A stretch of 64,000 bases of DNA from Anthoceros angustus (taxonomy: Eukaryota; Plantae; Anthocerotophyta): assembly GCA_010909165.1 (NCBI GenBank), contig MU008201.1, positions 372,001 through 436,000 on the forward strand, read 5' to 3'. Position 1 is the stretch's first letter. Each line of letters begins with the position of its first letter. Shown here piece by piece: positions 1 to 51,944 of the stretch. A program made the position numbers and the translations under genes. The notes beneath the pieces are model-generated. The model saw nothing but the letters and a program-made list of their open reading frames with translations, was not told the origin of the DNA and did no database searches.

Positions 1-393
1 GCCTCCTGCAGCCTACCATCACATGCACACATACGCAAGATATGGTTCCCGAAGTTGTGTGCATTCGCATCGTGCCCAAGCTTGACAGTGAGATCATGAA
101 CTCGTCACCCCATAACCAACAACGGGTCCGGTCGCCATACCGTGGCCATCGTTCAGGAACCCCTGTCGGGACACGAGCCTAACAACACACCCACCAGCAC
201 AGTATGTGAAGGATGCCAATTGCCCATTTGAGCTTGGGATATGTAGAGTGCTCGGCTCAGGGTTGTCGCCGGAAGCGGCAGTCATGGTTCGGCCTGAATT
301 CTGTGTGAGCGCCGGTCGAACGATGAATCTCAGTTCTGGTCCAGTCTGGTGGGCTTCAGACCCCAGACATCCTCACATTGCTGGATGAAGGCA

Positions 394-693
394 GCTAACC
401 AGGAGCTTAAAAATGAGGAACTTAGGTTAAGGCTAGAAAACGGAGGATCTTCAATATGAAGCATGGTTGCCAACTAGTATTGCTTTGATATCTAAGACCT
501 TGCTTATTGATCTCATGTTACAGAGCCTTCACTAACAAGAATGAGTGCGCATCGTGGGGCTAGGGAAGACTGCTCTAGGGCCGGGGTGCAGACCCAAAAC
601 CCTTGAGTCACCATGCGGGCACGAGCGCTGGAACCTGAAAATGTGAGCGCAACCAAACCTCCTACATTTCCTATTTTTTAGCCCCTTGTTAGC
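394..693. mobile_element. Putative MITE-like element (~300 bp) with imperfect terminal inverted repeats
   Basis: Left end GCTAACCAGGAGCTTAAAAATGAGGAA resembles the reverse complement of the right end, GCTAACAAGGGGCTAAAAAATAGGAA. The interior is non-coding. No clear TSD, unless the terminal GC is a 2-bp duplication. Confidence 0.45.
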
Positions 694-1872
694 TGGACAT
701 CACACTATCGCACAGAGCTCAAGTGCCGGAACAACACGAGCGACAACACTTGCAGGACATCGAACAATCATTTGAAAAGTCGCAGGACGGATGGAAACTG
801 GAGGTTTGGCAGAGCCAGAGCCAGAGACTGAGGCCCTGACTCACGGCAGCTGCTCCAGCCCTAACCTCAGATCATACTGTACATGGCCACAGTCAAGAGC
901 ACGGCTGTTTGGCCCAGTCCTCGCAAGTGGCCAAGTTCCAAACAATTCTGAAGCAGAGCTTCAAATTCCTGTAAGCGTGGCCCTGCAACATGTAAAATGT
1001 GGCAGGCAAGCATTCGCTTGACGTCGCGCATGAGGAGTTTCAACATGGATGTGGAGGCACCTCGACCTATCTCCATGTCCAGAGCAGCAACACATGCGCT
1101 TCAGCTGTCACAACTAATGTATGTGTGTGAGACTAATGTGTGAGGAGCAGCACCTCCATGAAAATACTCAGTGTGTTTCCACATGTATCTATCTCGGTTT
1201 TAAAGACTGCGCCCTAAAGCCGTAAAGATAAAAAGGGACCCTATAACTAATGTGTAAGACTAATGTGTGAGGAGCAGCACCTCCATGATGCAGCTGATAG
1301 TGTTTCCACATGTATCTCAGTTTCAAAGACCGTGCCCAAGAGATAAAAAAGGATCCTATAATACATTTCAGGTATGTTGATCTCAAGAATCGAAACCATT
1401 ACCGTTCGGTCATTATAGGCAACACGACTAACGAAAACAAAACAGACAAACAAATTTATTTGATGTCCACTAAGGGTGAACATGCCGCCCTGGGACTCGT
1501 TCTCCAGGCAACTTGCTCCATGGAGTAAACTAAACTAAGTAGCACCAGAGGTATTCCTCTCTTGGAAGGTACTTCATCCGGTCCCCCTTGCGGTGTAGAG
1601 TGCAATCAACACGATCAATATGCGATATAAAATATATAGTTTTTGAGGATTAACAAACCCAACGTGGAATGGGGCATATACGCCCTCCTATTTTCACAGG
1701 CCTTATGTACTAGAAGAAGAAGACATTGGGAAGCGCAGTGAAGACAGAGTCCAATGCGCAGTGAAGACAGAGTCCAATGTCGGAAAAGCTCCTCTATTTG
1801 CCGGCAAAGACAACAAAATTTTCATGGTTATGGGCCTTGGCTAGCTAGTGTCTATAGGTGTCATGGTGACTA

Positions 1873-2072
1873 CATCTCTTGCTCCATCTCTTGCCATCTC
1901 TTGCTCCATCTCTTGCCATCTCTTGCTCCATCTCTTGCCATCTCTTGCTCCATCTCTTGTCCTCTCTTGCTCCATCTCTTGCCATCTCTTGCCATCTCTT
2001 GCCACCTCTTGCCACCTCTTGCCACCTCTTGCCACCTCTTGCCACCTCTTGCCACTTCTTGCCACCTCTTAC
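1873..2072. repeat. 10/12-bp minisatellite (CATCTCTTGC, CATCTCTTGCTC, CACCTCTTGC)
   Basis: Directly visible tandem array just downstream of the TBP-like stop codon. It explains the many repetitive spurious ORFs in this interval. Confidence 0.95.
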
Positions 2073-2108
2073 CATGTGCTGCCATTTCGGATGGTCATGC
2101 CCAGTAGT

Positions 2109-2852
2109 TCATGAACTCCTTGGAAGACGACAGCTATTCTGTATGAACGGGTAGAGCCGTTCAACGCACCGGGAAAACTGACCGAGCTCCCGTGCTCCTG
2201 TCACCACGATATTCCCACTGTGATAAACAGTGACATTCACCCACTTGTCGACATACACTTGCTGACGAAGGCCAGGATACAGTTCCGGCTCAAAGGTCAG
2301 ATACCCAAGCTGCCCATCATCGTTGTCCCCAGCTTTGTATCCCGTCTGCTCACTCCCGAGCAACCTCCGGAGAAGGGGCAGGTCCAGGCCGAAGGGCAGC
2401 TTCAGCTTGCCCACCCGGTTGGTGACGCGGAACCCGGAGACTCGCACATCCGCGTACCCGATGTCCTGAACGAGCCGCGCGATCTCGTCCCCTGCACGGT
2501 GCGCAGAGCCCTCGTTGGGAGCTCCCATGAACGTGACTTTCCCCGTCTTGAACACGAAGGCAGTCAGGCCCCGCCTCTGCTTCCAGCTGAGCTTGCAGCG
2601 AACGAAGCCGCCCTTCACCTGGTGCTCCGCGTTGGGCAGCAATGTGCTCAGCATCGCCACGTCCACAGGGACGCCCAGGCTCAGCGTCCCGCACACGTTC
2701 ACTTCCTTGATGTGTTGAACCAGGATCGCAGCCGATGGCAGCTGGCCAGGCTTGTCCTCGACCTTGTCGGCGCCGCCGGCCACCAGCTCACTATCGTCCT
2801 GGCCTGCGAACGGGTCGGACATGTCCCGACCAGTCTCATATGCAGCATACAT
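2109..2852 (-). CDS. Divergent TATA-binding protein (TBP)-like factor, intronless; start at MYAAYE (2852) or MSDPF (2822)
   Basis: Two TBP half-repeats are present: VNVCGTLSLG..LPNAEH..F..TAFVFKTGKVTFMGA..IARLVQDIGY and FRVTNRVG..PFGLDL..FEPELYPGL..VYHSGNIVVTGA..ERLYPFI. These align to canonical QNIVSTVNL..NAEY..TALIFASGKMVCTGA and FKIQNIVG..YEPELFPGL..IFVSGKIVITGA. The ORF is uninterrupted. Confidence 0.85.
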   Translation of the reverse strand: MYAAYETGRDMSDPFAGQDDSELVAGGADKVEDKPGQLPSAAILVQHIKEVNVCGTLSLGVPVDVAMLSTLLPNAEHQVKGGFVRCKLSWKQRRGLTAFVFKTGKVTFMGAPNEGSAHRAGDEIARLVQDIGYADVRVSGFRVTNRVGKLKLPFGLDLPLLRRLLGSEQTGYKAGDNDDGQLGYLTFEPELYPGLRQQVYVDKWVNVTVYHSGNIVVTGARELGQFSRCVERLYPFIQNSCRLPRSS

Positions 2853-3301
2853 ATCCACAAGAAAAAGACGCCAGACACGAGGAGGGGAAAAGGACACCTC
2901 ACACGAGATCGGGAAAAAGACGCGAGACACGAGAGCGGGAGCAGGAGCAGTTGACAGGAGAAATGGCGGAGAACGAGCGTAAAACGGCAGGAGCCTTGGT
3001 GTATTTTCTTCCTGTAAAACCTAAGCAGTTTGGGCGGGAGGCGGCTGAGTTTGAATATTTCGACCTCGGGCGCGAGTTTTGATGTTGTCGACTCCACGGA
3101 TGGCTTCAGCGTGGGCTTGTCGATGTCGACATCCGCGGATGGATGGAACATGTTTTCATTTAACAGCTGGGTGCAGGGCTGGGAAGCTCAGGTCTTGAAC
3201 ATGTATGCAACATCCATGAAACGCACAACACTGCACAGCGTTAGGAGCTCTAGAGCGTCCCGACGCTCGTGAGAGCTAGAGGGACGTCCTGCGTTGCTCT
3301 A

Positions 3302-5945
3302 ACAGAGTGCGAACCATTCGACTTGTTGTGTTGAATGGGGCTGACATGCAGGTCCCTGGAGCTTTGGCCGTTGCTATTGCATCGAGAAGGTCCCGGTGTC
3401 CAAGGAATCTCGTTGTCGCATCCTGTTGTGGCTCTGGGGACAGCTGCTCGCACCTTGTGGATGTGGGTTATTGCGTTCGTTCAGGTGGCCACGGATTCCA
3501 CCATAACGTTGGCACAGGAAACAGTGTCGAGCCATGTGCATCACTGGGATCCACAGCACTCGGCGTGAGCGACAGATACCTGCTGCAGGTTTGTTAATCC
3601 CACTTTGCACAGTTGCATACACTGCTGGTTTGTGACTGCTAATCGGCACAGCTGAACATATCTTGTGTTGGTTTCTGCTGTGTGGATCTGGTACAGATGC
3701 TGGCTCTGGTGGCTTGTCAAGAGCAGGTCATGTGGTGACGTTTTTACAGGCACAGGTGCCAGCTGCTGCAAACGTCACATTTGTATTGTCACAGTGGACG
3801 AGTTCTTTATTTGGGGAGGACTTCTATCGTAGACATTGCTCTGGTGGGTTGATGCAGTAACCTTGAATTGCAAGCTGATCTTGCTGTGCACGAGTGTGGC
3901 ATGCACTTGAAACTGGTGAGGGCTTCTACGTGCACATCAACAGCTCGGCTTGTGAACAATCTGCTGTTAGTTCAGGTACCTTGAGGACGCTTGCAAGACG
4001 TGACTTACAGACCTGTATGCTGGGAGATGGCTTCTTGTTCCATAGTTTCACCGCCAGCATGGCTTCAGGCTGTGGAGGCAGTTGCGGCATGGCTTCAGGC
4101 ATGTGGCTCCGTGTTGTGGTAGACCAGATATTCTCACATGGACGTCATTGTATGGGCGTCGTGCAGAGGCCTGGCGGGCACAACATCGTGAGATGTTTGA
4201 CTACGGGATTCGTGAAGCCTCTTATTGGTTTTGTCTTGGATGATGGTGAGCACGTGAATCGGGACTGACTGTGCACCATTTTACTGCTTCTGGGTAAGAA
4301 CCCAGGGATGTGCAATCTTGGTAAGGAGGGGGTGGATTCTGTGCCTGGCTTCTCGGAGACCTGGTTGCACATCGGGTTCAGGGTCCTGGTCGCCTAGAGT
4401 TTCTTGCAGGTATGCCTCGTTTTGTTTGCTGCGCATGCCCCGTGCACGTTTCACACCGGAAATCCTATGTCGTAAACAGCTTACGGCTACAAGATGTTAT
4501 GGTGGTATTGCCTGGATTTGTTTTCCTTAACAACGGAGCCCTGCAGGGTTCACAGTTTCTCTGCTTCAAGAGCCCACGCCAAAAACCACCACTTTCTAAG
4601 GAGCGTCCAGAGCCGGCACCACGTGACCTTCTGCTGGAAGCTACGTCTTCTGCTGGAAGCTACGTCCATGTGGCAGCTTACACGGTATTCCTTTTTCTGT
4701 GAACCAGCTCACATGTACATGTTTATGTGGATCGAAGCTTGATAAAATAATTTCAGATTAGTCTGTAAGATTCATTGGACTGAGGCAGCTGTTGGCGTCG
4801 AAGAATTTCTCTATGCTATAATCATACAAAGTTCATGTCACGTCTACAAGTGTGTGTTCAGCAAAGACGTCCACTACTGGCCATGGAATTTGGAGACACC
4901 GGTCTACATTTTGAACTGTGCGCCATGAATGTACAGACAAGGTCTTCTTACGGCTTGGAATCATGATAGGTGGACTGTTTTGAATCTGCAATGGGGCTTG
5001 CAAAGGATATGGAAATGAATGGATCGTTCATTTTGTACCAGGTTTGCTAACAACTAGGTGGGCATGATTGGATGATTGGATGGTGATAATTGGTGGAGGG
5101 GACACGCGGCAGCTTTATTTCCTTGGATGTGTGAAGCTTCCTGCACATGCCCTGCTCACGGGGAGAGGCTGTCAGTTACCCTGTTCAACTGGCTCGTGAT
5201 TCAATGCTCAAATCATCTGTGCCACAATGAACTTGATTCATGGAGCTACCAGCCCGAAGTGACTTGCGAACGACTGTGGGCATGCAGTGGAACAGGGAGG
5301 CAATCTATTTTGTTGCCGCCCTCCATGTTCTACGAACTGAGGTGGCAGGGCGCCATCAGTGGAACTGAGACTACTGAAGATCTCACGGATGAACTGGGAA
5401 AGGAATGTGTCCTGTCGAATTCTGATTTACGAGGACTGCTAAAGTCAAGATTGATGGTCCTTTTGGAAATTTTCCACTGATCATGCAGTGCTTCAGAAGG
5501 CCAAAGTACAAAGTGCTTCTTCCGCTGCGATGGCTACTGATTCATTCTATGCGTATGCTTATTAGATGTTCCAGAAGCCGGCAGATCCCTGACATCATGA
5601 AACAGGAGACTTACAGGTCCTCATTTTGGGCACGTAGGAGCACTTGGTAGCGGCGGCAATTGGAGGGCTTGCAATGCAGCTGAACTGCCTTCTGGAAGAA
5701 GATGACACAACCTTAGTGGGTGCTGACGGCAACCAAGACCATGGATGGTGTGAGTGGACTGTACGGGTGACAAAGCGTGTGTACCCCCAGAAACTTCTTT
5801 CATCACTTACTTTTCAGTCCAGTGTGTGATCAACAGCCTCTTCAAATGGGAACCAAGATGGATGTCAGGATGAGGCTTGAAATTCTGTGTCACTGATACA
5901 CTTGCTGCATCTCCTTGAGATTAACATTTTCTGCTGATGTCTGTT
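3302..5945 (+). pseudogene. Inverted, intron-retaining, degraded duplicate of the class-3 lipase gene at 8906-12894
   Basis: Colinear with the reverse complement of ~12869-10065 (RVRTIRLVV, ALGTAARTLWMWVIAFVQVAT, LDGDNWWRGHAAA, LAMQLNCLLEEDDTTLVGADG). It has frameshifts, lacks the start codon, and has lost the segment carrying GHSLG. Confidence 0.85.
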
Positions 5946-6178
5946 TCGTAAGGGGTCCGGCGAGGTGTTGTGGGTAAACATGTTTCAGCCCGCTTGGAAT
6001 AACTGTTCGCACATTATGTCACAGGGGAAGCTTCCTGAGCCGTGGGGGCCCTGGAGTCTCTGTCGCAGACAGTCTGCTATTTCTCAGTCTTTATTTTACA
6101 CTGTGCCAAAACTCTGAGAAGAGCACACTCGGTGCGATCGCGAACTTGACAGATTTCACGCCTCCATAGAGAACCCTG

Positions 6179-6798
6179 TGATAGAATATGCCAAGGAACA
6201 CAACAAGAACTCTATAGATATATAACTACAGCATAGAAGATAGATACAAGAAAAAGTAGAGTGCACAGATCATGTATCTAGAACACAGTCTACAAACCCT
6301 TATATAAGGTGAGCCTATATACTAAGATAATATTTACATGCAGATCATATGAGAAGAGTAGACGTTATTAATAGGCGAGATGGGGAATCTCATCTACCCC
6401 TGAAGTCCGAGGAGGAACAACCCAAAAAGGGCTAATAGTAAAAGGGAAAGTCCTAGTCTCCTCGAATGCCTTTCCCGTTATAACTACCTAGTTATAACTA
6501 CCTACTGCACGAATGATATCGTGATCAGGGATAATGAAGGGTCTACCTACCACCAGTGCCGAAGAAGCCGCTAGTCCTACGCACATAACCGCCTATAAAC
6601 AGCGTTAGTCAGCGCTTTCTGCAGAGCTATGGAAACCCCCTGGCTAAAGAAAGCCACCATGGAGGAAAGGGAGGCCCCTCCAATTCCTGTAGCTGTGATA
6701 GGCTTTTGCACACTCCTTAATTAACCTAGGGAAGTCCTTGTCCTTGATCATATGACCGTAAGCATACTAATCAACAAACCCTAAAACTTATTCCAACA
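6179..6798 (-). mobile_element. Putative 3' LTR remnant of an LTR retrotransposon, with degraded adjacent internal sequence to ~7550
   Basis: On the minus strand, a purine tract (AAGGAGAGAGG) precedes TGTTGG...CTATCA (TG..CA termini), with an internal TATATAAG. No partner LTR or clear pol motif was found. Confidence 0.4.
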
Positions 6799-8905
6799 AC
6801 CTCTCTCCTTAAAACTAATTGTAGTCTTGAAACCTTCTCTCCTCTTTAATCTAGTTATCATTTAGCCTAGAAGTCCCTTTACACAAGACGTGTGACAAGA
6901 GAGAAAATTCTAAGTAGCATTAATTAAAAACCCTTAATAACAACGAAAAAAACTCATTAGGGAGGAGTCTTTATGACTCTAGTAAGTCTACTTCTATGAT
7001 AAATGCTGTGGATGTAGAAGTATAACCCAAGGTGATATATAGTGAAAATACAAAGTAAATTTTTCTAAAGCATGGAACATTCAAAACATGACTGCAAATA
7101 TATAGTAGAGCCATTGGACTGCACAACACCAATATCTCCAACCTCGATAGGAAGAACCATCTCCAAGATCTATCCGCTGCCCATCAGAATGAGATTTAAA
7201 GCTTGAAAACCAATTTTGTTTACCAGTCATATGCTAACATGCACCCAAATCAATACACCATTCACCATTTGCATCAGCAGCGACACTCAACAAGGCAAGA
7301 AAAGAAAGTTTTGTAGACAATGAAGATAGTGGAGGAACAGTAGGCCCTGATTCACCAATCACCACATTACTTTGTGGCAAAACAGAAACTCGAGAAAATT
7401 GACAAAATCATGCAATATGTCCAAGTCGTTGACAATTAAAACTAATAAGAAGAGCACAAGACACTCCACCCAAAGTTCGAAGCCCAAAAAAAGCCGGATA
7501 TGATTGTGAGGAAAAACGAGGTGGATGTGAGAAATTCTCATTCCCTAGCAACCTACGCCAATTATCGTTTCGAGCAACACGTTGCTTTTGTTTAAATAAC
7601 CTTATCTTTAAGCAAGTAATTAATATTGATTAATCTAACATGTTTATTTTAATTAATTGTTGATTAGTATTAATTAAACATGGTTAGCCATGGAGATCGG
7701 TAAGTTGCAAGATCTGCACACAAAAAGCTCCAAGCGCACAAACTATCAAAAGAATGCCTAGCTGAGCGCGCAAGGCAACTATATAGCATGTTCTCAATTG
7801 CTTCCAAACATCCACGTTAGCCCTTAAGGTCTATGTGAATCGTCCTCAATGTTAAGGCCCCAAATAATTGCTCATTGGGAAACTATTCTTCTTCCAAAAC
7901 TTTAAGCTCCTGCGCCAACGGTCTGGTCCTACTGCACAGAGCTATGTCTTTTATGTGCACCTTTCACACTTGGCATTAATCTTGTATTTTAATCGCTCTC
8001 CTAACAAGATGAGCCAGAAGATGTCATTGCAACAAGAATCCGGCTACCCTGGCTTGGCAGTTTGGCACCGGATTACACACGAACTAACCAACTGCTTCTG
8101 CTTTTGTGAACAAAGATTCTCACTCTCCAACACCTAATCGAACTTCAAAGCTGTTGCTAACATCAACCGCAGCGCGTCATGATCACAACATACAAGTTTT
8201 TCTATCCAAAGTTGTGTCAATCAAGTCATAGGTGTAATGAAGTTCTACATGGGGGCACGACTCTGATTTGTACAGAGGATTCTGCAGCTTGCAAGGCTAT
8301 CGCTTGTTTCCACGCTGACAATCAAGCCAAGTCTCTCATCTCAGGCCTGCCCAATCCACCATGGTCAGGAGTGAGGATTGGTGCTTACACAGCAATGAAT
8401 CATGCCAATTCTCTCCTCTCCTGCAATAACCATAATGGTCAGGAGTCAGGATTGGTGCTTAACACACAGTAACCCATGGTACGATTTGACCTACTACAGC
8501 GCTGGAATCTTACCAAAGGCAAGCCTTCACCTAGTGCCCTAGTAGTTGCACTGGTGGAATAAAACTGCTGCCGTTTGAATGAATCCTCATCCTGCAACGC
8601 ACAATTAGTCTCACTCCGGGGTCGAAGCTCTCCAAACTGGGTTAGTTCGAAGTATTTGGGTCTTTTGGCAATATGGTACCCTCTCCTGCTTCCTCGGCTG
8701 TAAATGTGACAACACCATCTTCCTCAGCTATAATTGTGACAACACCGTCTTCCTCGGTGTGGACACAATCTTCCTCATCTTACTTTCAGGAGGTTTCCTC
8801 CTAGCCTATACTAAACTTGGGATTTATACAACCGTAAGTTTTGATTTCATATGGACAGCCTCTAATGGAATGTGCCAGCACAACAGTAGAGAGCACAAAT
8901 GCAGT

Positions 8906-11900
8906 TCAAACAATCTCTGAACTGTCTGAGATGTTGTGAACAAAACCATTGTCCTCTCTGAATTCCACATCAGCAACAAGTTCATTCAAGGCCTGTTGAC
9001 ACCTGCTCACAAAGGATCACATGTACCACCTCAGCAACAACATGACAACGAAACCTTGAAGCAACTCGGAATGCCATTAGATCGAATGGGACCAAAGTCC
9101 CCATACTTACTTCCAAGGTAGATGGTCAAGGAACATGGATGGCGACACCACAATGTCCCTGAAATGTGTGCAGTCCCTGAGAAGAGCCCTGTGCCGGTGC
9201 TTGTGACATTCACTATACAAAGTTCGCCTCCTACTTGCCTTCAGGTCGCAAACGACATGTATAATTAGTCCAGGTACAAACATCTCCGCAGGCCACAGTT
9301 TCTCCACTGCTGCTGCCATGCTGGTGTTATCCATTGATCCAAACAACTGTGGCTCTTCAGAAATCTGCAATTCTACGTGGTTGCAACTCTCCTCTGAGAC
9401 CAGACTTTCTGCCCCACTGTGTTTTCTACATGTGCTGAGAAGCCTCTCTGCATCCTCACCATGGCAACTTTCACCCCCTGCGCGCACACCACAGACTTCT
9501 CCATCAGCATTCTCAGACATGGAAACACTGCTGCTTCCACCAACAAAACTTGATCCATTCCATGCCGTTGTGTCCTCTGCCGTGCGCAGACAAGCAGAGC
9601 CTTCAGCTGATTCAACAAACGTTTCCAATTTCTTGGTTGAATTGGCATCTAAGGATCCATTACACATGAGCTCAGAGCTACTGGCTGACTGAAAGCTACT
9701 ACCCGACACATGTATGAGTCTGGAACCACTCTTAGGAATTGAAGGTTTCAGCTTGCTCTTCGTCATGTGCATTATACACTGGCATGTATGAGAACAGAGA
9801 CAAAGACCACCTTTGAATGAGTTGATAAATCGCCGTCGAAAGTATTGGGGGTTCTCATCTCTGGATGTAGATGAAGAGCTGTGAACTGCAGAACTGCTTT
9901 GCTCGGATTCCAAAACTTTTTGTGAACCCCAACACCGCCAAAGATTCGTGACCACAGCAGAATCAGCATTCACAGCTTTTAACTTAACAAGAGCTTTCTC
10001 CCGCAGCTTCATGATAGATGACAAAGATAGTCGAGAGGAGAACTCATCATTGTAGACTATACTGCACACATCAGCAGACAACTTTGATCTCAAAGAAATG
10101 TGGCAAGTGTATCAGTGACAAACAGAACAGCCTCACCCTCATAATTGGTACCTGGTTATGAAGCTAGAACAGGCTTTGGCTGTGACAGCATCTAGACATG
10201 GTAGTAACCCATAAGCATACACATGTAATGAAGGGAACCGATCATAAAGCTGCAATGCCCAGCCAATTCAGGTGTCAGAATAAGATTAGCACAGTCAGTA
10301 TAAAACTACGCAACTTCAGTTGGCTCTAAGCATCACATGGATCGTACCCTTAATGCTGTCAAGGAAGCAATAGCACCCCCCAGTGAATGACCAACAAATC
10401 GGAGAGAATAACCATCACACGGTCCTTCTGGAGCAAGAAGTGAAGACAGCCATCCTGGTTCACTTTGAAGAAACTGCTGATCACCTGTTTGGTACACAAA
10501 GGTCTGAAAAGTAAGCTATCCACGCTTTTTTAACCATACAGTGTGTGATAGAGGACACGGTCAATCCACTCATACCATATCTTGGAATGGTGGCTTCGCT
10601 GCCATCAGCGCCCACTAAGGTTGTGTCATCCTCTTCCAGATGGCCATCCAACTGCATTGCAAGCTCTCTTGCTGCTGCTACCACTCCTATGTGGCCAAAA
10701 TGAGGACTTGTGGAGGCGATCTCCTGTTTCATGATGTCAGGGATCTGCTGGCTTCTGAAACATCAAAGTACACATCAAATTCATCAGTAGCCATTACAGC
10801 GGAAGAAGCCTGCTATACTCTGGCCTTCTGAAGAACACTACAAGCAGTAGAAACATTCATCAACTCTTACTTCAGCAGTCCTTGTAGATCGGAATCTGAC
10901 AGGACACACTCCTTTCCCAGACCATCTGTGATGAGATCTTCAGGAGTCTCAGTTCCACGGACAGCTACCACCACAGTTCGCAGATCATGGAGGGCTGCAA
11001 CAAAATAGACTGCCTCCCTGTTCATCTGCCCACTGCCGTTCGTAAGTCACTTCTAACCAGTAGCTCCATCAATCAAGTGCATCATGGTGCAGATGATTTG
11101 AGCATTGAAATGAGAGTAAGTTGAACAGAGTACCTGACAGACTCTTCCCTTGAGCAGGGCATGTGCAGGAAGCTTCACATGTCTAAGGAAAGCTGCTGCA
11201 TGTCCCCGCCACCAATTATCACCATCCAATGATGGCCTCCTGTCACCAAAAGTCATACAAAATGAGCGAGTTCATCTCAACATCCTTGCAAGCACCACAG
11301 CAGATTCCATGCAGCAAACCTGTTACGATTCCAAGCCGTAAAAAGACCTTGTCTGTACAACCATGCACACAGAAATGTGGACCGGTGTCGCCCAACATCC
11401 AGCAGTGGTCCCTGTTGTATACATGCAAAAGTTACAAAGGACTTTGCACAATAAGACTACACGTGAAATTCCTCCGATGCCACCTAGCTGCCTCAGTCTG
11501 ATGAAATCTTACAGACTAATCCAAATTTTTTTTGTCACGCCATATAAACATGTGAGCCAGTTTACAGAAAAAGAAATACCGTGTAAGCTGCCACTGCATA
11601 TGGATGTAGCTGTGTAGCTTCAAGCAGAAGCTCACGTGGTGCCTCTGGATGCTCCTCATAAACCGTTGGTTTCGGCGTGGGCTCATGAAGGAGAGCAACT
11701 CCTATACACAGGACTTTGTTGTTGAGAGAAGAGCAAATCCAGATAACATAACTACCTCTGGTGTGAAACGTGGGTCAGCAAAGCAGAAAGGGCATACCTG
11801 CGAGAAACTCTAGGTGACCAGGACCCTCAGCCCGATACGCAACCAGGTCACCAAGAAGTGAAGCTACAGAATCCACCTCCTCCTTCTTAAGAACATCCCT

Positions 11901-12894
11901 AGGGATTATCCAGAAGCAGTACATAGGTGCTCAGTCAGTCCCAATCCACTCAACATAACCCAAGACAAAACCAATATGAGCATCTGCCACTCACAAGTAT
12001 TGAGACCTCCCAAGGCAGCAAAGTACTTCTCGGATCCCGTAATCAAACATCTCACGATAATGTGCCCGCCAGGCTTCAGCACGCCGCTCATACAATGACC
12101 TCCATGTGAGAACATCTGATCCAGCACAACACTGAACCACAGCCTGTATCCATGCTGCAGCTGGAACTATTGTAAAGGGAACATGAAGCCATCTCCCAGC
12201 ATGTCTTGATCCACCTGTAAGTCACTAGCATCAGCAACCTGAATTGACCGCAGAAGTTCACAAGCCAAACTAGAAGCCCTAACCAGTTGCAAATGCCACA
12301 CTCCAACACAGCAAGACCAATGTGCAATTCAAGCTTCCAGAATCACTACATCAACCCACCAGAGCAATGTCTATGATAGAAGTCCGCCCCAAATGATGAA
12401 CTCCTCCACAATACAAACGTGATGTTTGCAGCAGCTACCACCTGTAAAAACGTCACCACGTGACCTGCTCTTGACAACCAGAGCCAGCATCTGTACCAGG
12501 TCTGCACAACAGAAACCAACACAAGAATCATCAGGTGCCGGCTAGGTCACAAATCAGCAGCGTTTCTAGATGTGGAAAATGACAAAGCTGCAGAAGCTAC
12601 CCGTCGCTTATGCCGAGTGGCAGTGGATCCCAATGGGTCTGTTTCCTCTGCCAACATGGTGGAAGCCGTGGCCACCTGAACGAATGCAATAACCCATATC
12701 CACAATGTGCGAGCAGCTGATCCCAGAGCCACAAGACTTGATGCGACAAAGATATCTCTTGGACACCCGGACCTGCTCGATGCAGCAGCAACGGCCAAAG
12801 CTCCTGCTAACAGAGCCCCATTCAACACAGCAAGTAGAATCACAACAAGTCGAATATTTCGCACTCTGTAGGGTTCAAAGATCCCCGACTCCAT
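8906..12894 (-). CDS. Lipase class 3 family protein with N-terminal transmembrane segments (diacylglycerol lipase-like, At1g05790-like), multi-exon
   Basis: Starts MESGIFEPYRVRNIRLVVILL, followed by hydrophobic helices and WYRCWLWLSRAG. Motifs: GDNWWRGHAAAF, VVAVRGTETPEDL, the nucleophile motif LRFVGHSLGGAIA (~10370-10410) and the C-terminal SPSMFLDHLPW. The last exon ..QQALNELV..SEIV ends in TGA at 8906-8908. Introns are GT-AG. Confidence 0.88.
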
Positions 12895-13653
12895 CCCTGC
12901 CGAGGCCTTGCAACCATCACCTTCTTCCAATTTATCGTGTTTCAGATTATCACGTCCTCTCCCACGAAATATAAAACCTCTCTCGAGGACGTAGGCGATG
13001 ACCCAGCCAGCCCAAAGAAGCACGCATTTCCCACCTCTGACTCCCTTTCTCACGCATGCCAGATAGTGCTTTCTGCAACCACTTGCAACCCGGGCAGCCA
13101 AGTCGAGCCCCGATCCCGTAGCATGGCGAAGCATGTAAAACCGCGACCATGCTCATCCACTATAGGAACAGCATCGGGAACGATAAATCCAAAGATAAAA
13201 CTGCTCTCTCCAAACCTAGACCCGGGTTTCCCAAATTCACAACCATCCAAATCAGGAAACTCCCCTTCCTGGATCAGGATTTCAATCAGCATGACCCACA
13301 AACAGCTCAGATCCTGTGGTTTCCTCCAAGTGCTTCTGATGGGAATTGCGAGGAGCCATGGTAATACTCTCCAAGCTACGTCAACGAAACACCAGCTCAC
13401 CGGTCAGGCAACAAGCTTGTACATACATAACAGAAGAATTGCAGGCTGTCAGGAGGGCAAGAACAGCAGCGGAAAGGAATTGGCAGACTATTTGTTGACT
13501 GAGGTGGACGCCAATTTCGCCAGCCAGGGGGATCCATCCTTCCGACTTTTGTGGGCGACACGCTCGATGCGGCGGCCGGGTACGACGTCTGACAGGCTTG
13601 GGTGACGAAGATTTGGATTCCGCAGTTTTGCGCAGCAGCCGGTGAGCGGAGCC

Positions 13654-16161
13654 ATGGAGGTGGCAGAATGGAGCATGCTTCAGAATCGGTTCTACCGGAA
13701 GCACGAGATCCACGCAATGCGATGGCAGGATGTGGATCTAAGCAGGCACAAGGTGGCGTGCGCCAGGTTCGGGGGTCCCATCGCCATGATCAGAGACGAG
13801 TCCAAAATGGTGCAGCTGAGGTCGGAGTCGGTGCGGCCCAAGCTGCTGATCTTCTCCGCCTGCGGGAAGCTGCTGTCCAGCTTCGTGTGGGAGAGGCCCG
13901 GGGGCAGGCTCATCTCCATCGGATGGACGGACGAGGAGATTCTGCTGTGCGTGGTGCAGGACGGGACAATCTTCCAGTACAACGTCCACGGGGAGCTCTT
14001 GGAGCAGACCCTGTCGCTGGGGGAGGATTGCTGGAGTGAGGGGGTCTCGGAGTGCGTGATCTGGGGGAGTGGGCTGGTCTGCTTGACGGAAGCCAACAAT
14101 CTGTTCTGCATTCCGGATCTGAAGCAGCCTCAGGCCGTGAAGCTCGCGGATCCCGGGCTGGAGGACCCTCCGCACTGCATGGCGGTCCTGGAGCCGCAGT
14201 TTACTGTGTCGGGGCATGTGGAGGTTTTGCTGGCAGTGGGGGCAACGGTCTTGGTGGTGGATGCTGATACCGTGCAGGACCAGATGCTGAACATTGGGCC
14301 TTTGCAGAGGATGGTGGTGTCTGTGGGGGGGAGCTTTGTGGCCTGCTTCACGCACGATGGCCGGTTGCTTGTTGTGTCGTCTGATTTGTCCAAGACGTTG
14401 GTGGATTACAACACGCAGTCAGCTCTGCCTCCGGAGCAGCTGGTCTGGTGTGGGTCGGACAGTGTGGTGTTATACTGGGAGGAGCAGCTGTTGATGGTTG
14501 GGCCTGATGGGGAGATTCGGTACCCGTATGACGAGCCCATCGTGCTCATTCCGGAATGTGATGGTGTGAGGATTCTGTCAAATTCTGCTACCGAGTTCTT
14601 GCAGCGGGTTCCGGATTCCACTGTTTCCATCTTTGGGTTTGGGAGTACGTCTCCCGCAGCCATGTTGTATGATGCCCTGGACCATTATGATAAGAGGAGT
14701 GCCAAGGCTGATGAGAACATCCGGCTCATACAGTCTTCGCTGCTTGAGGCTGTGGAGTCATGCATAGATGCTGCAGGGCATGAATTTGATCCTGCTACTC
14801 AGAAGACCTTGATGCGGGCTGCTTCTCATGGCTTGGCTTTCTGCACCAGCTTCCCGCAAAACCGGTTTCGGGAGATGTGCAAAACGCTGAAGGTTTTGAA
14901 CGCTGTGCGTAGTTTTGATGTGGGGATTCCGCTCAGCATTCAGCAGTTCAAGGTTCTTACCGCACCTGTCTTGGTTGCCAGGCTGGTGAATGCCAGAAAG
15001 CACTTGTTGGCACTCCGGATCTCAGAGTTTCTGGGGTTGAGCCAGGAGACAGTGCTGGTGCACTGGGCTTGCTCTAAGATTGCTGCTGCCACTGACGTCC
15101 CAGACTCTGTGGTTTTGCATTTGCTGGTTGAGAAGCTCAGTATTTGTCCTGGGACTTCGTTTGCTGCAGTGGCTGCTCATGCTCATCGCAGCGGACGGCA
15201 GAAGTTAGCAGCACTTCTGCTGGATTATGAGCCCAGATCGTCTGAGCAGGTACCTCTTTTGACCAGCATGGGGGAGGAGGAGAGGGCATTGGTGAAGGCC
15301 ATCGATAGCGGGGACACTGATTTAGTGTATTTTGCCATCTTCTACTTACTGCGGCAACGCTCGACAGCCGAGTTCTTGAAGATCATACACACCAAGTCTC
15401 TCTCTCGAGCCCTCTTCATCATCTATGCAAAGCAGAATGACCATGAGCTGTTGAAGAAATTCTTCCAAGCCACTGGACAACCACAGGGGGCAGCCCTGGC
15501 ATTGTGGAGAGAATCCTGGGAACAATCGAGGACGTCTGTTGTGGGTGCAGAAGCACAGCTCCCTGTCACCCGGTTGAGACTGATTGAGCAAGCTCACAGT
15601 TTGTATTCTCAGCTCAAGGATCACTCCTATGAAGCCAGTGTCACGGATGATTATCTGAGACTGCTGAAGGTGCAGCTGGAGCTCGAGGCTGCTACTGGGC
15701 AGTCTATTTTTGTTGATTCCAGTGTCAGTGACACCATCAAGACATGTATAATGCTGGGCAACCATCGAGCAGCCCAGAAAATCAGAACGGACTTCAAGGT
15801 TTCTGATAAGCGTTTTTGGTGGCTCAAGGTTTTTGCCTTAGCAGCCCTCAGGGACTGGGCAGCACTTGAGAAGTTCTCTACCGAGAAAAAGTCACCTATT
15901 GGGTACATGCCATTTGTTGAGGCATGTTTAGAGGAGGGGGAGAATGCCGAAGCATTGAAGTATGTATCCAGGGTTTCCGATGCCGAGCAAAGAGCTGAGG
16001 CATATGAACGCCTCGGTATGGCAAAAGAAGCGGCTGAGGCAGCTGCACAAGCAAAGGATGGACCGTTGGGCCGCCTCAAGCTTCCAGGGTTTGGAAGCAA
16101 CACTGCCGCTGGAGCGCTAATTGACACACTGAGAGACCGACTGACACTGCAGGCACAATAG
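13654..16161 (+). CDS. VPS16: Vacuolar protein sorting 16 / VACUOLELESS1 (HOPS/CORVET subunit), single exon
   Basis: Uninterrupted ~835-aa ORF from ATG at 13654 (MEVAEW..RFYRKHEI). Characteristic segments: VACARFGGPIA, LPPEQLVWCG, IPECDGVRI, AKADENIRLI, AIDSGDTDLVY, KRFWWLKV, KKSPIGYMPFVEAC. Confidence 0.96.
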   Translation: MEVAEWSMLQNRFYRKHEIHAMRWQDVDLSRHKVACARFGGPIAMIRDESKMVQLRSESVRPKLLIFSACGKLLSSFVWERPGGRLISIGWTDEEILLCVVQDGTIFQYNVHGELLEQTLSLGEDCWSEGVSECVIWGSGLVCLTEANNLFCIPDLKQPQAVKLADPGLEDPPHCMAVLEPQFTVSGHVEVLLAVGATVLVVDADTVQDQMLNIGPLQRMVVSVGGSFVACFTHDGRLLVVSSDLSKTLVDYNTQSALPPEQLVWCGSDSVVLYWEEQLLMVGPDGEIRYPYDEPIVLIPECDGVRILSNSATEFLQRVPDSTVSIFGFGSTSPAAMLYDALDHYDKRSAKADENIRLIQSSLLEAVESCIDAAGHEFDPATQKTLMRAASHGLAFCTSFPQNRFREMCKTLKVLNAVRSFDVGIPLSIQQFKVLTAPVLVARLVNARKHLLALRISEFLGLSQETVLVHWACSKIAAATDVPDSVVLHLLVEKLSICPGTSFAAVAAHAHRSGRQKLAALLLDYEPRSSEQVPLLTSMGEEERALVKAIDSGDTDLVYFAIFYLLRQRSTAEFLKIIHTKSLSRALFIIYAKQNDHELLKKFFQATGQPQGAALALWRESWEQSRTSVVGAEAQLPVTRLRLIEQAHSLYSQLKDHSYEASVTDDYLRLLKVQLELEAATGQSIFVDSSVSDTIKTCIMLGNHRAAQKIRTDFKVSDKRFWWLKVFALAALRDWAALEKFSTEKKSPIGYMPFVEACLEEGENAEALKYVSRVSDAEQRAEAYERLGMAKEAAEAAAQAKDGPLGRLKLPGFGSNTAAGALIDTLRDRLTLQAQ

Positions 16162-21821: not shown

Positions 21822-24800
21822 CTAAAACCATGGATGCCATGTCGGGTCCATCATGCAGAGGCTTCTTGGCTGCAATGCCGCCTCTACAAGTTCAGTCACC
21901 CCTCTCTGGACGGATTGCAGTGGTTCTGCAGAATCTTCATCCTGCACAAAGGAACAAAGGCCTTCAGTAAACCACGGATATCAGTAGTTGTTACAGCACA
22001 GGGACCTTAGAGAAACGAACCTCCTCAGGGAAAGACTGGGGTGCAATGGCTTTCACCCGATTCATCACCATGTCCACATTGGTTGTAACTTTCTGTTTCA
22101 GCTCACCCGTGGCTATGCCGCCTGCAGCAGGAGCTGCAGGCATACCAGGAGGTCTTCTCCATGACCACGATATGAGCTCATCTCTGAAAAACATTCCTAG
22201 CTGATGCTGCACATGCTGGTTCTGTGCAGCAAAGCGTTAAGACTGCTGAGTTGGAACTGAATTCCTTCAAAAGAAAAATTCACAGAACTCAACAATAACT
22301 TGAAATTCACATAGATGTTCACCTGAGGGGCTACAATGGACTGTGCAGCTGCACACATGGAGGAGACGAACAGACCTTCTACACCAAAGGGTGTAAAAAA
22401 AGTCTGCAGGTTCCTTGTCAGTCTAAATGGGACGGAATCTGTAAACTCCACCATTCCATTCATGTCATACGCTGCAAACACCAGACAGGAGTCAGTGTCA
22501 GTGACAACAGTAAGCCAGTAATCATCCTACAGATATCCAGCCCAATCACATCTCACCGGGATGGAAGTCATTCTGGAACACTTTTCCAGTGTTCTTTGCA
22601 AACAGAATCTTATTAGGAGATCGCCCACCAATTTGCAGCATATATGACATGAACCCTGAAAGTGCCAGTTGGACTGCAAACTGCTTTTTGAATGTCCAAA
22701 GATGGTTAGATGATGGCAGCGTCTTATACATATACTGAGAAAACACGTTTTCGCTGACGAAGTTGGTTGTTATCTCATTATAAGTATGAAGACGTAAGTC
22801 CACAAACATCTCATTTGACAGCTGCCCTGTGATCGCCTGGTTCAGCCTCTCTTTGAAATGTGTTATAGGTGCATCAGCCTCCCGACCATAGCGGGCACAG
22901 TTGATCTCATAAACCTCACCAAATGTACTAAACATTAGATCATCCTCCACCATTCGGACCTTTAAAACAGAAAGCAAGGTGACTGTGTGAGCAAATACTA
23001 GCAATGAACCAACCAGATTTCTAGACTTTGCAAGCAGGAAAACAATGACTTCAACCACATCACTGTCACATAGCATACCTGCGGCCACACCGGGATTATG
23101 ACAGGAGTATTAAATGCCAGGTGTCGGCGTCTTGACTCTTTGTGCTTGTCAAGCAACCTATTCAGCACTCTGAACAATTGCACCATGCGCTCGTCACTAC
23201 GAGCACTGGGCGTCAAAGATGTCTGCACCAGAAAATGCTTCTGGGAGCCATCACTACCAATCATGGTTAGGCGTCGGTGGCTACTACCATGACGGCGCAC
23301 AATTGGAACGTCAGCACCAATTCGGTCTAATTTCACGGCATGATCCGGGGAGTGGTCATTAAAATACTGCCCTGGAACTTCTATATCTACAACATGAAAT
23401 TCCCGTAACTGCCGGCTCTCCTCTTCTAATTTTAACACAGCCGGGAGTCGATCTTCAACATTGCTCTGCAGCACACCTTTCCAATGCTTCAACCTATTAG
23501 TCAGTTCTGCCAACGTTGCTGGGAAGGTTCCAGCGCTCTCAGGGTCCAGGTCCCTCTCAAAATCTCTTTTGTATTCGGTTACGAACTCAACATGCTTATT
23601 GACAGTGTCAGTTGAAAAACAGGCTCTGCAAACGCCTGCCAGTTCCTTTTTCAAAGACTGTGGCACTTCAGCTGTGGTTGCTGTTGGATACTTGTAGCAG
23701 CGATGTAACAATGCATACACCACAGCAAGCAGTCTCTCTTCTGGCAGAGGAACAAATCTTGCTCCAATTTCCGTGAGCATCACCTGCAACACCATCCATC
23801 TCAGAACATGGGATGCGAAAAGGACAACATTTGTAAGCGCCCAATTAAAGTAGCAGAATCTCGGCATCATCATTGCATCATCAAATCTTGGAAAAAATGC
23901 ATCAGAAAGAAGTCGTACCTCCAGCTCAGTTGCAAGGTTAGAATGCTTTCCTCTCAAAGCTTCCATTATGTCCTTGGCAGCTTCAAAAGCGGAAGCTGCT
24001 GAAGGCCATGCTGAACCAACATTCCTCCTTGAAGGCAGTTGAAGATCACCTTGCCCACTATTTGCAGGTTGGCTCGTTTCAGACCCTGCAGCCGAAACTC
24101 CCTCAGTGTTAGGGCCCCTATCGCCTTCTTGACCTGCATTGCTGGCGTTTTCCTGTCCTGTATTTTGAGTCTGAGACACATTTCCTGCTTGTGCAGCCGT
24201 GTTTGCAATAGCCAGTTGATTCGTTGCAGCAGCGTCTGCGGTCAATGCACTGTTGCTGGAAGCAGATGGCATAGGCCCACTGTCAGAAGAATTTGCAGGA
24301 GTGGCCCCAGGTGCATTTGCCATGGCTTGCGCACGGGCCTGAGCTTGGGCCTGAGCCTGAGCTTGCATATTCCTGTTGGCACTCTCTGCCTTGGTCGCAA
24401 TATCACGCCGTTCTAGCAGGTATGTCCGCAGCCAGTAGTATAAAGCCTGGAAAGATATCACAGTAACAAAAATTGTCATGTCCATGTTGTGGGCAGTGCT
24501 CCTTACAAAAGATCACGAGGTATCTATTGTTTATCAAACCAGCATGACAACGTCACAGCAAGAAGCCAGAGCTCACCCACCTGAGGATACACGGTTGCCA
24601 GTCTCACCAGAACTGTCCTGGAACTCTGAGCTTCCGGCCTCTGCAGTGACAGAAGCAGCTGTGGAATCCAGGACAGCCACACCCAATGCTGTATCTGTTC
24701 CCAATATTTATCGAGTGCCTTACCAACAGTACCATTCTGATTGTCAAAGCTCAGAAGATACAATACCCTTGCAAGGTGGCTCCTGCCATGCGAGCCACAC

Positions 24801-27800
24801 TTGATGCCCTGGAGAAAACAACTAACAGCATACTCCAGCCAGATCTCCTCACCTGTATCCTTGTACACCTATTCAGCATCAGGCAGCAGAAAATAAGTGA
24901 AAACACCAATGTGCTGAATTGAGACCCTACCAGACCTTGGACTTCGGATACTGACCTGATCACAATGATTACCCCAGCTGATCCACCCTTTTGGAAGATG
25001 CTTGAACAGCGAAATAGCTGTTGAAAACATTTGATTGGCATTCTCATTATCACGCATTTTTTGCAAGAATTCACCCTTCAGCCTGTAGATTTCTGCCTTG
25101 TGTTGCACAGGAAAATACTCCAGATTTGTAATGTTCAGGAGGTTTAGTCCACTAGTTAGCTCTCCCTTCATCTCCAAATAAGCCTTTGCTTGCTCTTTGA
25201 TCTTGACAAAAGCTTCCTGTCCAGTTAACAAGTTTTCAAGTATGTGAATGGAAGCTCAACCTGAGCAAGCCGGCACCATGATGAGCAGAATAAAGGGACA
25301 CCTACCTGAACCTCCATTGTCATGTATCCATACAGCTTGTTAAGGACGGTTACACACACATCATGTAGACCTTGCTTACGTGCCACATGTGCCAGCTTAT
25401 TTACACTCCAGGCCTTATCACGGAATCCAAGCTGATGGAGCTGTGGGTTGGTCTCTGTAAAGCCTTGGAAGGCATTAATTACAGTGTTGTACATGTGGTT
25501 ACGCCATGTCAAGAGCTCATACCAAACAGTCAATTCATCCCACTCATTTGGGGTTCTCAGTTTCCATGTGTCCAAAATGTCCTTAAGGTCAACATAGGCA
25601 CCCCCTGGAAGCTGAGGCCCAGAGCCCTGAGCCTTGCTACCGTTCGCAATTTCAATTAATACTCTTGCAGATTCCTGCAGCTCTACCAGTTGCTGAAACT
25701 GTTGAAGAACCGGAATGTGAGACTGGACAGCCATCTCAGGTAGCTGCCACCACTGTTGCAGAGCTAGTTCGATGCCTTGCTGCACCCTCTGTTCAGCATC
25801 ATGTACGCCATTCATGCTTCCGTCACTGAGTGCGACATATGCCTGAACCATGCGATACTTGGGGGTTTCTTCTACTTGGGCCTTCGGAAGTACAGTGTCT
25901 TTGAGGAAGGACCAGTCTGGCACTTTCCATAGACAATCTATGAGAATCTCATAGTTGTCGACATTCTTCCCGAACTCAGCTAGCACGTCCCAGTGATTGA
26001 GACGCTTTGCCCCCTGGATCCATTGTTCTTCCCACAGACACATTTCTGCCTTCGAGACACCTGTATTAAAAGAACCTTGAGTTGCCTTATTCATGGCCAT
26101 ATAGAAAACATCAGCAGCACGCTGCCACATTCCATGCTGCACCAGGGAAAGCCCTGCTCTAGTATCAGGAGTGATAGTACGTTTCTTCCACAGACCGTAT
26201 CGGACATCTTCCTCATTCAGCAACCGATACAACTCAGCAAGGGCATCAAAGCACCGTGTTTCGTGAGGAAAAAGTGATACATGACTCTCCAGCAAGGAAA
26301 TAGCTATATGCCAGGCATTGTATGTCTTCCCCAAGAATTTAATCAATTCACTAGGAATTTTGGGCTGGGGTTGGCTCAAGGAAAGACCTTCTAACAGAGC
26401 CTGTACAACATTTGGTCTTTTGTCTTGCTGCTTGATATGGCATTCCCTAGAAAGAAGGCTGATCATTGGCTTAGCAAGTGTCACCTGCTCTTCCTTCTGA
26501 AGGGTTGCCCAAACGATAGGGAAAACAAGCACCCACATATGATATGCCACATGTGCATCTCTGTGCGACAACTCTCTCAAAGGGAGAATAAGATCAGCCA
26601 CCTGCACGTAACGATAAGTGTACCGTCAAAAACCTAACTCGCTCAATCGCAACAGCAGTAACCACGGTAAATGGAACAAACCTGAAGCTTGCTTATCTCG
26701 TTCAGAAACCTTGTGTGTTTGTTGATGATGCCAAGGAACGTGGGAGGTGCGCCCTCAACCTCTTCTGGCACATCAGCAGTTTGTTGCTGAATTCCTGCCC
26801 GGTCTGGAATGCCTCCTGATGGCATCAGCGGAGGAATCTGAGCAGAATTGGGGGCTAAAGTGATAGGTTCGTGCTCAACAAGTATGGCTAGAAGAAGATC
26901 AAGGCCCTGCTTCAACCAAAACACGTCGCTTATATTATCCCACTCCTGCGATTGAATTAAGTATTGCAGTCTTGTAAACAGTGTTTTCCCGATAAAATCA
27001 TGGTAGATAGCAAAAAATTTCTGCCGCATCTCTGGGTCTCTAGCTCTAAGACCAAGCATATACTGCCGCTCCACCTTAAACACCTCATTGCGTACAGCAA
27101 CTGTGTACCTGTCAACCCGAGCATTTGCCGTCAGTAATTTGAATTTCAGAGCTAACATGGAAATAAGTCTTCACAGTGGGCTTACTTTGACGCATCAGAA
27201 CATAGTCGATGGAGCAGCTTCAAATACTTGTTTTCCCACTCTTCCAAAACAGAGGCAGGCATATGCTGCTGGTCAACCAGGGACAGCTTTTGCATGAGCG
27301 TGACAACATCCTTATTCGTGAGAGCCCCAGCAAGATTACCAGTACCTGCAGGTTTGAAATCATTTTCAACCCACTCCTTGATAATGTCAAGGATGGTTAG
27401 CAAAATGCCAGCATCAGTGCCTTTCTCTTGTAACATAGAGTGCAGACTGGATATAAACAGTCTCTTGCAATCTGCTGCAAAGAGCACACGTCCACTCATA
27501 AGATTTAAAAGAGCCTTCATATTGGCTATGACAACTCCAAGGTCTGCCATCAATCGAGCAGCAGCAGCAGCTCCATCTGAGTCAAGGTGGCGCCCCTACA
27601 AAGAAGAGCCAGAAAGGTAATAAGAAAAAACCACATCAAATGGGTTCAGCAAAATAACTAGCTCGGACAAGTGAACATCAGGTTCAACCTGGCGCATCAA
27701 GGCTGTTGCTGTTGCTGACATGTCACGATTGAGTCGCTGAACTACACGGACTAATGGCATCATGAACCGGTCTATGTATGACTTGTTCCCTTCTGCCAAA

Positions 27801-38521: not shown

Positions 38522-39043
38522 TTTATTATGAAAAAGAGATTGAGAAAACCCAATCTATACCCAAGAGAAGGGGAACAACCTTATGAGGGCACCAAACCAT
38601 GGGGACTAGTCCTTGTTGTCGCCAATCTTGTAATTGCCTATTGTGCCAAGGATATCAAAATCGGGAATGTAAAAGGGCCTATCCACCACTGGTGCCAAGA
38701 AAACCTACCGCCTCAAGGCCACATAGCCCCCATACACCGCTTTGGCCAATGCCTGCTGCAGGGCGATGGACACTCGTTGCCTGTAGAAAGCCACAATAAA
38801 TGAAAGAGGGAGGCCAACCCCATTCCTGCGATTGTGGTACTCCCTGGCACAAGTCTTAAGGAACCTAGAAAAGGCCTTGGCCATGGCCCCATGGATTTCG
38901 ATGGCGAGGGGGATGAAGGTGTGCTCCTGCTGCATAGGAGAGTACTTACAAATCTTCACCGTGGCACATTCCTCAGCCACCCTTCCCAAAGGATTGAGGA
39001 TCTCATGCTCACTAACGGAATCCCGAGTAGGGTCAGTGACAAC
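38522..39043 (-). mobile_element. 3' part (RLE endonuclease and 3' UTR) of a second CRE-like non-LTR element
   Basis: VTDPTRD..KICKY..FIPLAIEIHG..FYRQRVSIALQQA. The 3' UTR resembles that of the 19.6-21.0 kb copy and ends in AATAAA. Confidence 0.85.
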
Positions 39044-43030: not shown

Positions 43031-43160
43031 GGACTTAATAAGTCCGGACCTCAAGTCCGGACCCCAATAAGTCCGACCAAGTCCGGACCGACAACCGGAC
43101 CCGAGGTCCGGACCCCGAGACAAGGTCGGACCCCAGCCGGGCCGGACTGAATAAGCCGAC
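43000..43160. repeat. Array of (AA)GTCCGGAC motifs in the LTR (also at 55190-55300)
   Basis: Repeated palindromic GTCCGGAC cores are visible in both LTRs. Confidence 0.85.
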
Positions 43161-44116: not shown

Positions 44117-44134
44117 TGGCGCCGTTGCCGGGGA
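44117..44134 (+). promoter_or_regulatory. Primer-binding site complementary to the 3' end of tRNA-Asp
   Basis: TGGCGCCGTTGCCGGGGA, three nt after the LTR-terminal CA; the typical Athila-type PBS. Confidence 0.85.
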
Positions 44135-51890: not shown

Positions 51891-51944
51891 GTGAAGAAGT
51901 ATCATGCTTAGTGTTGGCGAGACGCCAATGATGAGAAGGGAGTA

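Follow-up and report, generated by a model that had tools for sequence, protein, structure and literature searches.

A highly divergent, intronless TBP-like gene in the nuclear DNA of the hornwort Anthoceros angustus

Introduction

Plant TBPs are among the most conserved of plant proteins. The locus described here lies in a stretch of 64,000 nucleotides of Anthoceros angustus DNA (the whole stretch that was analysed, called the window below), and carries a reading frame for a TBP-like protein that differs strongly from the TBPs to which it can be aligned. The question that it raises is what such a gene is. It could be an intact paralogue of cellular type that has followed its own course in this lineage, a recently inactivated duplicate, a retrocopy of the host's ordinary TBP, or a gene that reached the plant from a large DNA virus or another mobile element. 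The reading frame, its relatives, the predicted fold, the residues of the DNA-binding saddle and the surrounding DNA were examined, and each of these explanations is considered where the evidence that bears on it is given.

An unbroken reading frame with both TBP repeats

The frame runs on the minus strand from its first ATG at 2852 to a stop codon at 2111-2109, an unbroken 247 codons, and is open upstream as far as a GTG at 2930. Open frames of at least 247 codons, counted in any of the six frames, arose in 7 of 2000 shuffles of the region. Codon periodicity is of the coding type, with a GC3 of 0.73 against a GC2 of 0.42. The 247-aa product is matched in two stretches by the Pfam TBP model PF00352 (E 2.6e-19, 69.3 bits against a cut-off of 22.9), and both tandem TBP repeats are present in it, above the curated threshold. 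An earlier note, made from the letters of this DNA, had described an intact ORF with both TBP repeats at exactly these coordinates and had proposed a search with the TBP domain profile; the description holds, and the search gives 69 bits over the two stretches. Among solved structures, the best matches by sequence are the TBPs of yeast, human and Arabidopsis (E 3e-15 to 5e-14), the yeast protein standing first (HMMER, E 3e-15, residues 52-238 aligned). The gene and its parts are as follows.

2109..2852, minus strand: ORF of the TBP-like protein, 247 codons plus stop (ORF list; Pfam PF00352, E 2.6e-19; GC3/GC2)
2715..2852, minus strand: N-terminal tail, residues 1-46, acidic and predicted to be disordered (pLDDT 45-48 over residues 1-30)
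2463..2711, minus strand: first TBP repeat, residues 48-130, with N69, F99 and F116 kept and helix 2 reversed in charge (best Pfam stretch; residue audit)
2139..2438, minus strand: second TBP repeat, residues 139-238, with N159, T215 and the TFIIB stirrup kept and the changes F190Y, F207Y, I194R and L205T (alignments; strands and helices of the model; residue audit)
2310..2366, minus strand: mildly acidic insertion of about 16 residues (about 163-181), after helix 1' and before the second stirrup (gaps in the alignment to yeast TBP; pLDDT 63-84)

The N-terminal tail (residues 1-46) has no alignable counterpart in the family in the MAFFT alignment. An antisense ORF of 244 aa (2220-2954) and the other overlapping ORFs gave no match in a family search, and are by-products of the GC3-rich coding frame. 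Together, the ORF, the Pfam match, the alignments and the structural model sustain the description of the locus as an intronless, intact and highly divergent TBP-family gene in a nuclear region of a land plant. Being intronless carries little weight of its own, since Vps16, a host gene nearby, likewise consists of one ORF, of 835 codons.

Divergence, relationships and constraint

An exhaustive phmmer search against 1.84 billion cluster-representative proteins returned 724 relatives of the TBP-like protein, all at or below about 36% identity and none with E below 1e-30. For the best 150 of these 724, the median identity is 27%, and the maximum is 32-36%. Those of the top matches that are named come from sources as scattered as Penstemon, a moth, a red alga and a tapeworm, and are either ordinary or incomplete TBPs; the remaining matches come mostly from metagenome or transcriptome assemblies. 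The TBP-like protein itself is absent from the 1.84 billion representatives, a word-index protein search gave no match, and exact-sequence look-ups found neither it nor the Vps16 protein on record. Missing orthologues are only weak evidence of lineage restriction, because the library holds no closer relative of Anthoceros angustus.

A maximum-likelihood tree was made from 143 TBP cores, with the matches unlabelled and without labelled TBPL1 sequences. The end branch of the TBP-like protein in this tree is 2.29 changes per site long, compared with a median of 0.52. The protein has no supported sister; it joins only another long branch, and that without support. As this is its only join, phylogeny cannot name the origin of the gene. 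Both the median identity and the branch length agree with the view in the earlier note that the protein is far more divergent than ordinary TBPs.

As read from the alignment columns, this divergence is structured and fold-preserving and is not random. Hydrophobic residues are found in 52 of the 56 hydrophobic family columns (background 42%), and nine of the 11 conserved Gly and Pro residues are kept. The consensus residue is present in 12/16 columns that are at least 90% conserved, compared with 3/54 variable columns. The pattern points to selection for a folded TBP-like protein over most of the history of the gene, a history of which the last short stretch is not covered by such counts; the open frame is compatible with recent inactivation.

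These counts bear directly on the possibility that the gene arose as a processed retrocopy of the ordinary host TBP and is drifting neutrally. A retrocopy would be intronless and could stand alone beside unrelated genes, as the TBP-like gene does. However, a neutral copy that had reached about 70% amino-acid divergence would be full of stops and frameshifts, whereas here the frame is open, at a length that only 7 of the 2000 shuffles attained, and the changes spare the hydrophobic core, the conserved Gly and Pro residues and the partner contacts. There is also no poly(A) tract, target-site duplication or disabling mutation. Fold-preserving divergence combined with an open frame thus makes neutral decay of a host TBP retrocopy very unlikely, to the point that this explanation is effectively refuted. 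The "retro-duplicated TBP" that had been suggested earlier as an alternative, if meant as a decaying retrocopy, falls with it, given the open frame and the 52/56 core columns that are kept.

Predicted structure

The structure prediction proposed in the earlier note was run on the protein alone, with AlphaFold2 and a 30-sequence alignment (A1), and gave a TBP saddle with a mean pLDDT of 86. Core blocks reach 90-98, and both lobes have the canonical order of strands and helices. Residues 1-38 are disordered in the model, and confidence dips at about 165-181. The protein is thus confidently predicted to form the pseudo-symmetric alpha/beta saddle of TBP, a confidence that is partly owed to the family alignment that was supplied. 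In Foldseek comparisons, superposition of the model on the TBPs of plant, yeast and human gave TM scores, normalised to the target, of 0.85-0.89 and an rmsd of 2.1-2.6 Å, at 23-26% identity. Archaeal TBPs come next, at 20-22% identity.

Residues of the DNA-binding saddle

Residues are given in yeast numbering. They were called by aligning the protein with HMMER to the yeast TBP chain 1ngm/1ytb, where 60 added to the chain number gives the yeast number, and cross-checked with the MAFFT alignment A1 and with counts per column over 142 relatives. Partner assignments for the stirrups and helix 2 (TFIIB, TFIIA and regulators) follow the established TBP literature.

The TBP-like protein keeps N69, N159, F99, F116, K120, V161, V213 and T215. 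All three TFIIB-contact stirrup residues (E186, E188 and L189) are kept, as are N91 and E93 of the TFIIA stirrup and R141 of helix 2. Other positions carry residues that occur in at most 5% of the 142 relatives: V71C, R98G, R105S, L114F, T124M, F190Y, I194R, R196Q, L205T, F207Y, K211N, Y94H, R137D, K138E and K145D. Position 133, a Lys in yeast, is His.

The rare residues fall on the DNA face and helix 2, while the partner-contact residues are retained. The intercalating Phe residues F99 and F116 are retained, while F190 and F207 are both replaced by Tyr, which is found at these positions in 0% and 4% of relatives, respectively. Three of the four central minor-groove readers (N69, N159, T124 and T215) are kept, T124 being replaced by Met. 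Four phosphate-binding basic residues are lost (R98G, R105S, R196Q and K211N). The basic patch of helix 2, formed by K133, R137, K138 and K145, becomes H, D, E and D, and the net charge of the core is +6, compared with a family median of +12 (142 relatives). An insertion of about 16 residues with a net charge of about -3 stands before the second stirrup and extends helix 1' and the following loop; in A1, a few other odd TBPs have inserts at the same loop.

Much of this pattern had been noticed from the sequence before the present alignments were made. Both alignments and the column counts agree that N69/N159, F99, F116 and E186/E188 of the TFIIB stirrup are kept, and they bear out the Tyr/Tyr pair at 190 and 207. 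Remodelling of the basic helix-2 patch is likewise recovered (K133H, R137D, K138E and K145D, with R141 kept), and the acidic insertion of about 15 aa that had been described before the second stirrup is seen here as the insertion of about 16, with lower pLDDT. The one claim that carries a caveat concerns positions 194, 203 and 205, those altered in the altered-specificity mutant TBPm3, which had been read as R, N and T. I194R and L205T are found in both alignments. V203N is alignment-dependent: MAFFT places Asn at 203, whereas HMMER keeps Val there, with the Asn as a one-residue insert. Read from sequence in this way, the remodelling goes beyond what was first listed, since V71C, R98G, R105S, L114F, T124M, R196Q, K211N and Y94H are additional changes.

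Comparison with other TBPs and TBP-related factors

The closest known structures are those of canonical TBP (Arabidopsis 1vok/1qna, yeast 1ytb and human 1cdw), with which the TBP-like protein shares the two-repeat saddle (TM 0.85-0.89), N69, N159, the first Phe pair, T215 and the residues of the TFIIB and TFIIA stirrups. It is only 23-30% identical to them; among one another, the canonical cores in A1 agree in most columns of a strong consensus. It also differs in F190Y, F207Y, T124M, I194R, L205T and the alignment-dependent V203N, in the loss of the four phosphate-contacting basic residues, in its acidic helix 2, in the 16-residue insert, and in its charge of +6 compared with +12. Identification as a canonical TATA-binding TBP was rejected, on the retention of only two of the four intercalating Phe residues and three of the four minor-groove readers, the loss of the helix-2 patch and the long branch.

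TBPL1, an animal protein, has lost the PG of the second stirrup and the intercalating Phe residues. The TBP-like protein differs from it in keeping this PG and in keeping half of the intercalating aromatics as Phe. A TBPL1 cluster is found among the structural neighbours of the model in the ESM Atlas (TM 0.65/0.84). More generally, the metazoan factors TRF1, TBPL1/TRF2/TLF and TBPL2/TRF3 are similar in concept, each being a TBP paralogue with a changed DNA face and possible docking of TFIIA and TFIIB. The host here is a plant, and they are at most analogues of the TBP-like protein, not orthologues. The characterised TBP-related factors are animal variants, often restricted to the germ line or the embryo (PMC3044737). 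The literature on TBP, TBP-like and TBP-related factors in hornworts, Anthoceros, land plants and other non-seed plants was searched, and no TBP-like clade of plants or hornworts to which the gene could belong was found to have been described. Both sources agree with the earlier statement that TBP-related factors are a metazoan feature with no characterised equivalent in land plants.

The best structural neighbour in the ESM Atlas is a diatom-dominated cluster (TM 0.72/0.75 over 204 residues). Divergent TBP paralogues of protists resemble the TBP-like protein in being odd, lineage-specific TBPs that have arisen repeatedly. They differ in belonging to another kingdom, and the likeness to the diatom-dominated cluster is one of structure and family level.

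Viral and mobile-element TBPs

The gene could also have come from a large DNA virus of the giant-virus type, or from some other mobile element, and be either a relic or domesticated, a reading that partly overlaps the others considered here. TBP-like proteins of giant viruses (Nucleocytoviricota) share with it the TBP fold, strong divergence, the lack of introns and variable inserts. The gene is an orphan, richer in GC and CpG than its flanks. A moss and a lycophyte are known to carry footprints of giant viruses (PMC4083422), although TBP goes unmentioned there. As a lead only, the Atlas clusters that lie nearest by language model consist of TBPs, and their labelled members are mostly viral.

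Direct comparison is less favourable. Models of known viral TBPs are 8-15% identical to the protein, mostly with poor TM scores, and are thus far poorer matches than cellular TBPs (23-26%, TM 0.85-0.89). Scans of IMG/VR and metagenomes with peptide patterns, a family alignment and a back-translated second-stirrup motif found no close kin; they returned one distant viral TBP and seven chance motif matches. The distant TBP, the sole match in IMG/VR, is on viral contig IMGVR_UViG_3300042568_001250 (1770-4917; L001), where a 281-aa ORF, a cell-like TBP of 188 aa and a 482-aa ORF lie side by side. By sequence, the 281-aa ORF looks kinase-like and the 482-aa ORF looks like a major capsid protein, so that a cell-like TBP beside a putative capsid gene does occur on a viral contig. 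This TBP is 26% identical to the Anthoceros protein over 130 aligned residues, which is half the protein, and the other ORFs of the contig have no match in the 64-kb window.

The viral gene context is also absent at the locus itself: no viral hallmark genes were found beside the TBP-like gene in the 64-kb window, and its neighbours are host genes. The earlier suggestion of a virus-derived TBP thus finds no support at the locus, where there is no viral neighbour, nor in the 8-15% identity of the viral models, and we consider a viral or mobile-element origin quite unlikely.

Genomic surroundings

The genes around the TBP-like gene (a DUF7358 gene, Vps16 and Tra1) are host genes, and place it in the nuclear DNA of a land plant. 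Vps16/VACUOLELESS1 (13654-16161, plus strand) is an uninterrupted ORF of 835 codons with both of its Pfam domains, and its best matches, at 66-70% identity, are liverwort, moss and lycophyte proteins. Intronless host genes therefore occur in this region; Vps16 might itself have arisen as a retrogene and taken the place of its parent. On the minus strand, a Tra1/TRRAP gene spans about 22.5-34.6 kb (22500-34600). Its exons are unusually long, with ORFs of 238-495 aa that match Tra1_central, Tra1_ring, FAT and PI3/PI4-kinase models. The features closest to the TBP-like gene are the following.

2861..2940, minus strand: 26-bp repeat in three copies, rich in pyrimidines on the coding strand; the array ends 9 bp before the ATG (Tandem Repeats Finder and repeat search)
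1873..2075, no strand assigned: satellite with a 10/22-bp unit in about 19 copies, beginning 34 bp past the stop codon (Tandem Repeats Finder and repeat search)
2250..3300, no strand assigned: CpG-rich block, o/e 0.85-1.23, GC 0.53-0.65 (sliding-window counts)
3300..5950, no strand assigned: left arm of an inverted duplication that takes in part of the DUF7358 gene, with its partner at 10060-12860 (inverted repeats, 74-94% complementary)

Farther downstream of the TBP-like gene, there are a perfect 23-bp tandem duplication (1733-1778) and a 67-bp direct repeat (1124-1317), the copies of which are 87% identical and 127 bp apart. Terminal inverted repeats, a target-site duplication, a poly(A) remnant and extra copies of the flanks were searched for in the 64-kb window and not found, and positions 1-13000 have no Rfam match.

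The DUF7358 gene is on the minus strand, and it is its 5' part that is duplicated. Similarity between the arms stops at about 3300 and about 12860, within the first exon of the gene, so that the left copy is cut off at about 3300, inside exon 1. As the block that carries the TBP-like gene adjoins the truncated arm at about 3300, the gene is at a rearrangement breakpoint. The CpG-rich block, of about 1.2 kb, takes in most of the TBP-like ORF and 450 bp upstream. CpG o/e falls to 0.1-0.6 on the satellite side and to 0.35-0.75 in the neighbouring duplicated arm. Elsewhere in the window it is 0.88 at the 5' end of Vps16 and 0.9-1.16 in an LTR-retrotransposon block at 39-56 kb. This retrotransposon block (39000-56000) has a GC content of 0.55-0.62 and no CpG depletion, in host gene bodies the o/e is 0.4-0.56. 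Since the values at the TBP-like gene are shared with both the Vps16 5' end and the retrotransposon block, they fit an unmethylated, promoter-proximal gene and a recent arrival alike.

These surroundings bear on another explanation, namely that the gene is a non-functional yet unbroken young duplicate, from an amplified and dispersed TBP-like family that once had a function, whether in the host or in some mobile or viral element. A position at a rearrangement breakpoint with tandem repeats on both flanks suits such a copy, and so does a CpG o/e near 1, as in the retrotransposon block, which is undepleted and probably young; this fits recent arrival. The same CpG pattern, however, also marks the 5' end of Vps16, an ordinary host gene, and the frame of the TBP-like gene is fully open, with the conserved core residues all unbroken. 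A young, non-functional duplicate is a real alternative, though on balance a somewhat unlikely one.

Proposed role of the TBP-like protein

The explanation that we tentatively prefer, with a little less than even confidence, is that the gene represents an intact member of a strongly divergent group of TBP paralogues, restricted to this lineage and of cellular (eukaryotic) type. From its sequence, the protein could be an alternative or competing promoter-recognition factor. How it would bind DNA and its partners, and what part it might play in transcription, is inferred below from the residues that are kept and changed.

The two-lobed saddle would be seated on DNA via its concave sheet. The DNA-kinking Phe pair of the first lobe is retained, and so are both central Asn residues. 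In the second lobe, where both Phe residues have become Tyr and the TATA-specificity residues have changed (T124M, I194R, L205T and, at 203 or next to it, V203N), DNA would be read differently. The changed specificity residues and the four lost phosphate contacts (R98G, R105S, R196Q and K211N) suggest a target different from the consensus TATA box, or weaker binding. The kept stirrups for TFIIB (E186, E188 and L189) and TFIIA (N91 and E93) suggest that the protein could seed an initiation complex containing TFIIA and TFIIB, or compete for one. The helix 2 surface of canonical TBP is used by regulators such as TAF1-TAND2, Mot1/BTAF1 and Brf1. With its basic helix 2 turned acidic, a paralogue of this kind would be uncoupled from such regulators.

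Against such a role, the four lost phosphate contacts, together with the change at T124, could simply mean that DNA binding has been lost. The locus is also a rearrangement breakpoint, with a satellite on one side and a truncated duplicate on the other.

In its most far-reaching form, the preferred explanation of a cellular-type paralogue would be that a non-seed land plant has evolved a TBP-related factor family of its own, independent of the animal TRFs. The intact copy would be a working member of this family, nucleating TFIIA/TFIIB-dependent initiation on non-TATA promoters and escaping the helix-2 regulators, perhaps at a particular stage such as the sperm lineage. Taken as a whole, we consider this form unlikely. 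If true, a TBP paralogue of a plant lineage, with some surfaces kept and others changed in this way, would amount to a natural experiment on the rewiring of core promoter recognition, and would open alternative initiation complexes in plants to testing.

Upstream of the gene, the three 26-bp repeats are a candidate leader or core promoter. CpG o/e over the gene and its upstream region, at about 0.9-1.2, is similar to that at the 5' end of Vps16 (0.88) and in keeping with an intact paralogue.
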